From Bugula neritina (taxonomy: Eukaryota > Animalia > Bryozoa): a stretch of DNA of 43,323 nt. Shown in pieces: positions 7,992 to 43,323 of the stretch. Positions within the stretch are counted from its first letter, which is position 1. Every line of letters starts with the position of its first letter. The position numbers and the translations under genes are program-made. The notes beneath the pieces were generated by a model. It was not told the origin of the DNA. It saw only the letters and a program-made list of their open reading frames with translations, and made no database searches. The DNA is taken from NCBI GenBank assembly GCA_964035545.1, contig CAXIUT010000099.1, positions 54,698 through 98,020 of the forward strand. Reading direction: 5' to 3'.

Positions 7992-9076
7992 ATGATCTTC
8001 GAGCAGAATGAAGGCACTCTGAATGCATGGAAAACGGAAATGCATATGTACTAAAAGAATAAAAGAACTAAAAAGCCTTTTGGAAAGACAACTTCATAGA
8101 TGGAGCATGTAACTCATGAAAAGATGAAAGCAAAGGAATGTCTATTCAATCCAGTTCTTCAAACATTTGCTAAAAAAGACGATTAAATAGGAGCAAGCCA
8201 AAGTGCATAGCAAAAAAGGGCAAAATCTCTTATGAATCATCTGGTACATCATCAATCATATAGAAACAAACTGTTAAGTATGAAAAAAATTTTGATATTG
8301 TGACTCTGCAGTCAAATGATCCTTTTGTTCCAAAACCTGATAATAGAAAGCTTGGACCAATCCGAAACGCTTATAATGTGATCAATAATCAGAAAATGCC
8401 TTAGTTTTATTTCTAAAAAAGATAGATGAGACTTCCAGTTGAAAGAACAAAAAAATTACTTGAACACCATCATCGAGATTTCGACATTGTGAAGAATACT
8501 TTTAAAGAAGACAACTAAAAAAAATTAAAAGAAGAAATTGATAAAGATAATAAATAAATTTATGGAAAATATTCTAAAACTCATAATTACGATCGAGTTT
8601 TTGGCAAATTTTATGATGATAAAAAAGAAGAGTAATATCAAAAGCATAGAATAGCTGATGAAAAATAACACGGAAAAAATGTTTAAGAAAAACTACCTCC
8701 TTCTTATGTTTATAGAGAACCTTTAATTATTGACTATTCAAAACCTTTGCCTTAAACTTTGAAAATACTTGATTAGAGAAGTAATTACTAAAAAAGAAGG
8801 TTTCAAACGAAATATGTGGTTCTAGATGAGTATGCCAAAAGAAACTAATAATAAGAAGAAAAAACAAACCAAATTTTAAAAAATCATGTGCATTTCGGAA
8901 GAGTTCTTGAGGAAAAATATAAATAATTTGATATTGTTACAAATAAACAACATAAACCAACTCGAGCTGAAGACCTTTATGGTAAAAAATTAAATGTCCA
9001 TAGTTGGGAGCAATTAGAAAAAGAGGCATCTAAGGAAACATCGAAGATGGCTTTCAAAAGTGGAGGCTTCTCATGA
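7992..9076 (+). CDS. Hypothetical protein (354 aa), possibly ciliary, with repeated FNPV/FDIV/YNVI motifs
   Basis: Intact frame after removing 20-nt intron 8244-8263; recurring [FY][DN][IPV][IV] motifs. Confidence 0.65.
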
Positions 9077-9189
9077 ACATATGGTTATTATTAATCATAA
9101 TCTATTATTTCATATCCATTAATTTTGTATTAAATAGATAGGAATAAGATTTGAAATTCAGACTAAAGTGAGCCTGACATAATTAATTG

Positions 9190-10068
9190 ATGAAGAAAAG
9201 AGGACCAAAAAAGAACAGATCTTCCCTAAGTCGTCCAAGTTTTGGAGGAAATAGCAGTACCTCATTTATTCCAGGTCAAGATTCTTTCTCTTTTTCTGAG
9301 ATTCCTCGAGCAGTTGATGACAGTCATTCATGTAATTTTTTTCACAACAATCTTCCAAGAAGAACTACCTTTTTCTAGCCTGCTGAAAGTGAGGCAGAGT
9401 ATGCTCAAATCTATCCTCCAAGTGTTAAGAAGACACTAAACTAACATAATATTGGATAAGAAAACAATGAAAAAATTTGGAACTTTCTAACGAAATACAA
9501 TAATGCTAGTCCTGATGATACAAGTGAAGATGGTTCAAGTCTTAAATTTAACTCCAGAAATACAGAGGGAAATAGTCAGAATATTTTATCATCACTGGGT
9601 GAATAAGATTAAACTCCTATTCATACAACAGAACATAATATTTCTCCTCATGATATTTCTCCAGATGATATTTCAAAAGTAACTCAAGAAAGAAAAGTAG
9701 CCTAGCTTAGTTTCATGAATCTAAATATTACTCCAAAAATATAAAAACTAAAAGCTTACAATTAAGTTATCCAGTACACTCTTAAGCCTGAATTTCCTCA
9801 TTTATTAGAAAATAAAAATACACTATCAACTACTCAAAGACAAAGATTCATAAATAAAGGAAAAAATATCCCAAAACCGCTTCATTTATTGAGAATTTAA
9901 GAAGAAGACGAAGCACACAAAAGAAGAAAACTTGTCTATAAGGAATTCAACCACTTTGAAGATGAACAGAGGATAACAAGAATGACTCCATTGCGATACT
10001 GGCTTGGTGAGAAAATTTCTTATAAGGGTTTGAAAGCTAAAGGAAAATGGATCATTTAAGATAAATGA
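9190..10068 (+). CDS. Low-complexity protein with C-terminal CENP-C-like motif
   Basis: 292-aa intronless frame, S/P-rich; RITRMTPLRYWLGEKISY at 9970-10023 fits RxRxxPLxYWxGExxxY. Confidence 0.6.
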
Positions 10069-10138
10069 TCTTTGATTGATGACTCTAATCATAATATGTA
10101 ACCATAGTTTATAATTGGATTGATAAAAAAGCGGGAGA

Positions 10139-33536: not shown

Positions 33537-35914
<2,378 letters not shown>

Positions 35915-36089
35915 TTGAATTATTAACTAAAATTAGCGCTTCTGTATTTAAATTATCAAATCCAATATTTCACTCGTATATATAACCCTTCAAATTATCA
36001 AAATATTTAAGATATAGAAATGTGCTAAAATGAAGTTAATTTAATTTTTATTCAATAATCATAGAGATTTATCTTTTATTATTTTATTG

Positions 36090-43150: not shown

Positions 43151-43323
43151 GGGGTTGGGGTTGGGGTTGGGGTTGGGGTTGGGGTTGGGGTTGGGGTTGG
43201 GTGGGGTTGGGGTTGGGGTTGGGGTTGGGGTTGGGGTTGGGGTTGGGGTTGGGGTTGGGGTTGGGTGGGGTTGGGGTTGGGGTTGGGGTTGGGGTTGGGG
43301 TTGGGGTTGGGGTTGGGGTTGGG
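43151..43323. repeat. Right telomere, (GGGGTT)n
   Basis: G4T2 repeat at the sequence end with two variant units near 43201 and 43263. Confidence 0.98.

Follow-up and report, generated by a model that had tools for sequence, protein, structure and literature searches.

The reading frame that starts at position 9190 raises the question of whether a short protein encoded in a bryozoan genome assembly is a centromere protein of a ciliate. The frame lies on the forward strand of the window, the whole stretch of 43,323 nucleotides that was analysed. It is a peritrich ciliate gene that has been carried along in the bryozoan assembly. Its 292-residue product is predicted to be nuclear and mostly unstructured, and on balance it probably serves as a centromere-nucleosome adaptor of the CENP-C type. 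Judged by its sequence, the protein would be a compact variant of the centromere-targeting proteins of the CENP-C/CENPC-k type.

The window covers the terminal part of a 98-kb contig (G000:C108) and closes with TTGGGG telomere repeats at positions 43151–43323. Two irregular units (GGGTGGGG) interrupt this tract near 43199 and 43265. The G+C content of the window is 29%, and its long frames are broken solely by TAA and TAG, never by TGA. Sequence comparison indicates that TAA and TAG are read as glutamate in this ciliate, which is the peritrich code. The MCM4 gene on the reverse strand (34025–35989) served as one check of the code. Adjacent pieces of this gene align to MCM4 residues 560–591 and 593–630, so the in-frame stop between them falls on residue 592, which we take to be the glutamate of the invariant MCM motif 'MEQQT'.

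A second check came from an ortholog. An exhaustive search of 1.8 billion proteins with the 52-aa C-terminal piece of the window protein returned a sole true relative, a 52-aa fragment (P0001; E 2e-7), whose contigs (L007, L008 and L009) come from ENA marine metagenome assemblies. With TAA and TAG read as glutamate, L007:50–925 encodes a full ortholog of 291 aa that is 62% identical to the window protein over 285 aligned residues. The ortholog shares its start with the window gene, has its TGA stop one codon later and ends 15 residues past the motif. In the alignment of the two genes, TAA and TAG codons face GAA or GAG most often. For example, the window TAA in 'IIEDK' of the C-terminal tail is GAA in the ortholog. 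The glutamate of 'YWLGEK' is a TAG codon in the ortholog, which fits the glutamate code and the GE[KR] consensus of the motif alike. Besides the ciliate of the window, the gene was found in only this one other species. A word search with alignment A1 recovered P0001 again and no further relative, and a word search with the N-terminal piece gave zero candidates. Scans of JGI metagenomes with a single piece and with alignment A1 returned pattern matches and no tblastn-confirmed relative, and in the ESM Atlas the C-terminal piece matched nothing better than weak clusters, viral or hypothetical (score ≤0.78).

The original prediction described a compact gene hidden from standard-code annotation, and this description is accurate. 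The 292-codon frame contains ten in-frame TAA or TAG codons (at 9376, 9442, 9457, 9604, 9610, 9703, 9742, 9763, 9898 and 10057), and public gene callers recovered only the 52-aa fragment of the ortholog because of the TAG codon in its 'YWLGEK'. The start codon, ATG 9190, is the earliest ATG past an in-frame TGA at 9175–9177. No AT-rich GTA..AG intron candidate of 15–35 nt occurs within the frame of the window gene or of its ortholog, which makes the intronless, 292-aa gene model solid. Read-through past the TGA was considered and rejected; the 73-codon in-frame continuation has no similarity to anything, and the ortholog likewise stops at TGA. The protein is polar and of low complexity, with 8.6% asparagine. 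It had been called rich in serine and proline, which is apt only in part: serine makes up 9.6%, proline 6.2%, glutamate 10.3% and lysine 9.6%. The features of the gene are collected in Table 1.

Table 1. Features of the candidate gene and its 5' flank, in window coordinates.
Feature	Position	Strand	Remarks
Complete coding sequence, intronless	9190..10068	+	292 aa, then TGA stop at 10066-10068
Basic N-terminus MKKRGPKKNR	9190..9219	+	Net charge +7 in residues 1-30; ortholog MKRRSSKNNK also basic
Conserved N-terminal half, residues 16-120	9235..9549	+	60-93% identity to ortholog (15-residue windows); dN/dS 0.25
Charged stretch ahead of motif, KPLHLLRI-E-EEDEAHKRRKLVYKEFNHFEDEQ	9865..9969	+	KPLHLLRI and KLV.KEF kept in ortholog
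CENP-C-type motif RITRMTPLRYWLGEKISY, residues 261-278	9970..10023	+	PDB phmmer matches; core invariant in ortholog
Basic C-terminal tail KGLKAKGKWIIEDK	10024..10065	+	LKAKGKW.IEDK kept in ortholog
Conserved 5' flank (GAATAAG.TTTGAAA..CAGACTAAAGTGAG)	9141..9189	+	~80% identity to L007:1-49

The gene is closely flanked by others. The upstream neighbour stops ~115 bp before ATG 9190, and the downstream neighbour begins ~225 bp past the TGA. The 49-nt flank ahead of the ATG shows ~80% identity between the two species at a coding-sequence dS of ~0.96 and is likely a promoter or 5'UTR element. A short block just past the stop (TGATTGATGACTCTAAT), common to window positions 10073–10090 and L007:923–942, is a probable 3'-end signal. 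The upstream neighbour (8120–9073, forward strand) encodes a lysine-rich protein of 318 aa with a recurring short F/DIVTN-like repeat (NFDIVT, DFDIVKN, FDIVTNK). This neighbour was also found at low depth, over window positions 8000–9066, in a run from another study with another organism label (X3), indicating that the same or a very close ciliate was present in another sample. The X3 contig ends at 9066, just before the stop codon of the upstream gene and ~120 bp short of the candidate gene; low coverage and an alternative chromosome end are both possible.

As originally predicted, RITRMTPLRYWLGEKISY lies in the 292-aa frame exactly 14 residues ahead of the stop. A phmmer search with the 49-aa C-terminal piece against 177,635 PDB sequences gave five matches in total, at marginal E-values of 0.04–0.8, and all five are CENP-C motifs of CENP-C or Mif2. 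They comprise the motif chains of chicken, human and rat CENP-C, a tagged CENP-C construct and a yeast Mif2 peptide from a kinetochore-nucleosome structure. Four of the five come from solved structures of centromeric nucleosomes or kinetochores (7bxt, 7xhn, 4x23 and 6qld). The residues aligned in these matches are P-L-x-Y-W-x-G-E-[KR]-I-x-Y plus an arginine at W-7. Conservation of the motif, proposed earlier as a check, was observed in the second peritrich-code species, in which the 13-residue core TRMTPLRYWLGEK is invariant (L007 and L009) despite an overall identity of 62%.

The lead of the motif differs from what had been claimed. Instead of the consensus RxRxxPL it reads RxxRxxPL, with arginine at W-10 and W-7 and isoleucine at W-9 (valine in the ortholog), unlike chicken and human CENP-C, which in the PDB alignment have arginine at both W-9 and W-7. 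The W-9 arginine is the acidic-patch anchor in rat CENP-C, the human central region, Mif2, the CENPC-k motif of Arabidopsis KNL2 and plant motifs. From the two sequences, isoleucine or valine at W-9 is to be regarded as a real departure from the canonical motif.

Conservation along the protein is highest in residues 16–120, which are presumed to form a partner-binding region. The conserved blocks in this half are SFGG..STSF.PGQDSFSFSEIPRA.DDSH, FFHN..PRRT.FFE, EYAQIYPPSVKK and KIWNFLTKY. The basic N-terminus is possibly a nuclear-localisation signal. For centromere targeting, plant CENPC and CENPC-k motifs close to the C-terminus depend on adjoining basic stretches that bind DNA, and the C-terminal motif together with its basic flanks is sufficient for targeting (PMC11879092). 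By analogy with these flanks, the KRRK patch in the charged stretch ahead of the window motif may contact DNA.

Known centromere proteins carry further domains that were searched for in the window protein. Owing to the in-frame TAA and TAG codons, remote searches were run piecewise (pieces of at least 20 aa for Pfam), which is less sensitive. With E up to 10, Pfam gave zero matches for the pieces of the protein and its ortholog, the cupin (PF11699), SANTA and SANT/Myb models included, so the profile match to which the original prediction had looked did not appear in either species. For SANTA, the N-terminal half was searched as pieces of 62, 21 and 48 aa, lowering sensitivity, and the SANT/Myb domain of the animal KNL2/M18BP1 members likewise had no Pfam match in the pieces of either species. 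The lack of a cupin agrees with the length of the protein, since the residues remaining after the motif leave no room for one, and with the result for PF11699, whose three matches in the assembly were sub-threshold and all on host contigs. The PDB includes the N-termini of human and yeast CENP-C bound to Mis12 complexes. The 62-aa N-terminal piece matched zero PDB chains at E up to 10, and no Mis12-binding motif was detectable in it, such motifs being short and divergent. The missing cupin, the lack of a detectable Mis12-binding motif and the Ile/Val at W-9 are sequence features that speak against simple membership of the CENP-C family. The original assignment as a CENP-C or KNL2-type candidate is partly supported, by the reality of the compact gene, the conserved C-terminal motif and its exclusive PDB matches to CENP-C/Mif2.

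An alternative, which we consider unlikely, is that the protein bears the motif and acts at the centromere without being orthologous to CENP-C. Candidates are then a KNL2/M18BP1-like loader or licenser of CenH3, and a lineage-specific CenH3 reader that works beside a canonical long CENP-C. The CENPC-k motif of plant αKNL2 lies at the C-terminal end and is replaceable by a CENPC motif (PMC11879092). The window motif, at residues 261–278 of 292, has this position near the C-terminus, and a KNL2-type CENPC-k motif is here indistinguishable from a CENPC motif. Two CENP-C genes are present in apicomplexans, and the CENP-C of Tetrahymena retains its cupin. A long CENP-C could also be absent from the data. 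The Ndc80 and Nuf2 Pfam models matched only large host contigs of the assembly (G000:C1:34609139-34609372 and G000:C3:29408804-29408926) and no ciliate contig; probably the ciliate genome in the assembly is incomplete, or its Ndc80 and Nuf2 are too divergent. Because the ciliate part looks incomplete, a long CENP-C could be missing, and by analogy with Tetrahymena, whose CENP-C has 1291 aa and a cupin, the ciliate of the window may have a second, long, cupin-bearing one. On the other hand, neither species gave a SANTA or SANT/Myb match in the less sensitive piecewise searches, and a search of the assembly for a paralog or another such motif recovered nothing beyond this locus.

It is also necessary to consider whether such a motif can arise by chance. 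The DNA pattern for PL.YW.GE has a single occurrence in the 216-Mb assembly, at the gene described here, and the reversed control of the pattern gave 0 forward and 2 reverse matches, indicating that the core alone is near chance genome-wide. The two other matches of the 1.8-billion-protein search (P0002 and P0003), which scored higher than eukaryotic CENP-Cs, are bacterial Ig-like cell-surface repeat proteins. They carry many copies of strings such as ITPARYKVGDTIKISG and RPVKLEYWKGEDIDY, of the type P.K.EYW.GD.I.Y.G, indicating that look-alikes can arise without homology. Scans that look for the motif alone can be misled by such bacterial look-alikes in so large a database. The window motif stands above chance through its neighbouring R..R and [KR]..Y residues, through its location in a frame that is under purifying selection, and through the invariance of the core in the ortholog.

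The gene is real and is under purifying selection. A second run with the same organism label (X2) contains a diverged allele or strain that differs by ~1.4% within the frame. Eleven of its 12 differences are synonymous in this frame and one, H154R, is not (dN/dS ~0.025). Given 21% synonymous sites, the rough probability of 11 in 12 by chance is ~3e-7. No difference falls in 9880–10068, the stretch with the motif. Between the window gene and its ortholog, dN/dS is 0.27 overall and, by thirds of the protein, 0.25 (N-terminal), 0.36 (middle) and 0.17 (C-terminal), at a dS of ~0.96 that places synonymous sites near saturation. Within the species of the ortholog, dN/dS is 0.11.

These results bear on a further alternative, that the motif is convergent or fortuitous and belongs to a conserved nuclear, chromatin or other disordered protein unrelated to centromeres, such as a macronuclear acidic-patch binder. 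This is quite unlikely. The canonical W-9 arginine is missing, the best PDB E-value is just 0.04, similar strings occur in unrelated bacterial proteins, the control pattern gave two matches against one observed, and neither Pfam nor the Atlas lends support. Nonetheless, every one of the PDB matches is a CENP-C motif, the 13-residue core has stayed invariant in proteins that are otherwise 62% identical, the C-terminal third has the lowest dN/dS, and the position of the motif and its basic flanks are those of plant CENPC and CENPC-k. Finally, that the frame is open just by chance in the AT-rich DNA of a ciliate is wholly improbable and effectively refuted: although the window has many long open frames, TGA being the only stop, and none of the RNA runs holds the 9190–10068 stretch, allelic differences are almost all synonymous, a full-length ortholog has a matching start and stop region, and dN/dS is low both between species and within the other species.

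The ciliate contigs of the assembly carry several H3-like genes. One of them (L041, G000:C43:16200-19300; ~1446–1870 of this locus, reverse strand) encodes an N-terminal tail unrelated to H3, an H3-like α2-α3 region and the C-terminal extension RIRG-LGDVGNR. A divergent N-terminal tail and a C-terminal extension are the hallmarks that were used to call the CenH3 of Paramecium, and on its sequence the gene is a candidate CenH3-like partner from the same ciliate. Its best PDB match is the H3 chain of 4x23, where the rat CENP-C motif peptide matched by the window protein is found as well. The gene changes frame between its two halves without an obvious intron, which is possibly an assembly indel. 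Two other H3-like genes (L017 on G000:C136 and L029 on G000:C51) each have a 20-nt GTA..AG intron (GTACTTATTAATTTATATAG and GTAATTAAAATTTTACTCAG, respectively). Loop 1 is lengthened and the tail divergent in the C51 gene, making this gene a second candidate for CenH3 or an H3 variant. An H2A.Z-like gene with in-frame TAA/TAG codons is present among the ciliate sequences, and no ciliate H2B was found there.

If the CENP-C-type reading is right, the protein would be imported into the micronucleus, where the C-terminal motif would dock on CenH3 nucleosomes. Tyr272 and Trp273 would touch the hydrophobic C-terminal extension of CenH3. Arg266, together with Arg263 in place of the usual W-9 arginine, would reach the acidic patch of H2A/H2B, and the basic flanks KRRK and KAKGK would contact DNA. 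The N-terminal half (residues 16–120), conserved still better, would recruit a further layer, in the simplest case the Mis12/KMN network. The protein would thus be a minimal CENP-C that dispenses with the cupin. A bolder version of this proposal, which we hold only as a tentative and rather doubtful possibility, is that the CENP-C of peritrichs has been cut to a monomeric tether of 292 residues that has no cupin, with a conserved N-terminal module that binds the outer kinetochore and a motif with a shifted arginine that binds the CenH3 nucleosome.

If this bolder version is true, the protein would be smaller than every CENP-C described so far and might make up the entire inner kinetochore of peritrich cells, and both dimerisation and the long linker would be dispensable for CENP-C function. 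The protein combines a near-canonical CENP-C motif with a very small build that has no cupin. As a natural 'minimal CENP-C' it would help to find out which parts of CENP-C are required for linking CenH3 chromatin to the outer kinetochore, and its shifted arginine would provide a test case for the variation allowed in the spacing of the arginine anchor. The gene also illustrates how genes in the peritrich code escape standard annotation. The inner-kinetochore proteins of ciliates first became known from a Tetrahymena preprint of December 2025, the literature searched describes none from peritrichs or Paramecium, and the 292-aa protein would be a second, independent way into ciliate centromere biology.

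Among the known systems closest to the window protein, CENP-C and Mif2 share its motif. Like human, chicken and rat CENP-C, the window protein has P-L-x-Y-W-x-G-E-[KR]-I-x-Y residue for residue, an arginine at W-7 and a disordered context. Yeast Mif2 aligns over P-L-x-Y-W-x-x-E-K-I-x-Y, with asparagine where the window protein has glycine. In length the proteins differ, since the window protein has 292 aa and the human CENP-C chain in the PDB match has 943 aa; yeast Mif2 has ~550 aa. Unlike CENP-C and Mif2, the window protein is without a C-terminal cupin and without detectable regions for binding Mis12 or the CCAN.

Plant αKNL2 and CENP-C share its layout. As in these proteins, the motif of the window protein is near the C-terminus and is flanked by basic stretches, KRRK and KAKGK. 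Its plant counterparts exceed it in length by a factor of two to three, and the N-terminal SANTA domain that defines KNL2 was not detected in the pieces of the window protein. The CENP-C paralogs of apicomplexans, set alongside by description, provide a case of alveolates with more than one CENP-C gene at the inner kinetochore.

Another close system is that of Tetrahymena. Only CenH3 and Ndc80 were previously known from the ciliate kinetochore, and the original prediction held that inner-kinetochore subunits were hard to detect in ciliates. That view has been outdated by the report of December 2025 that KiTT8 (TTHERM_01212850, UniProt Q24G81), a protein of 1291 aa, is the CENP-C of Tetrahymena (bioRxiv 10.1101/2025.11.28.691167). 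KiTT8 is located at micronuclear kinetochores; it carries a Mis12 motif at the N-terminus, a cupin at the C-terminus and, in addition, a CENP-C-like motif (bioRxiv 10.1101/2025.11.28.691167). Kinetochore genes of Tetrahymena show a cell-cycle peak. No report of a CENP-C from Paramecium or a peritrich was found in the literature searched. Compared with the published description of KiTT8, with its Mis12 motif and cupin, the window protein is far shorter and cupin-less. Like KiTT8, however, it belongs to a ciliate of the Oligohymenophorea and carries a CENP-C-like motif in a protein that is otherwise very divergent.
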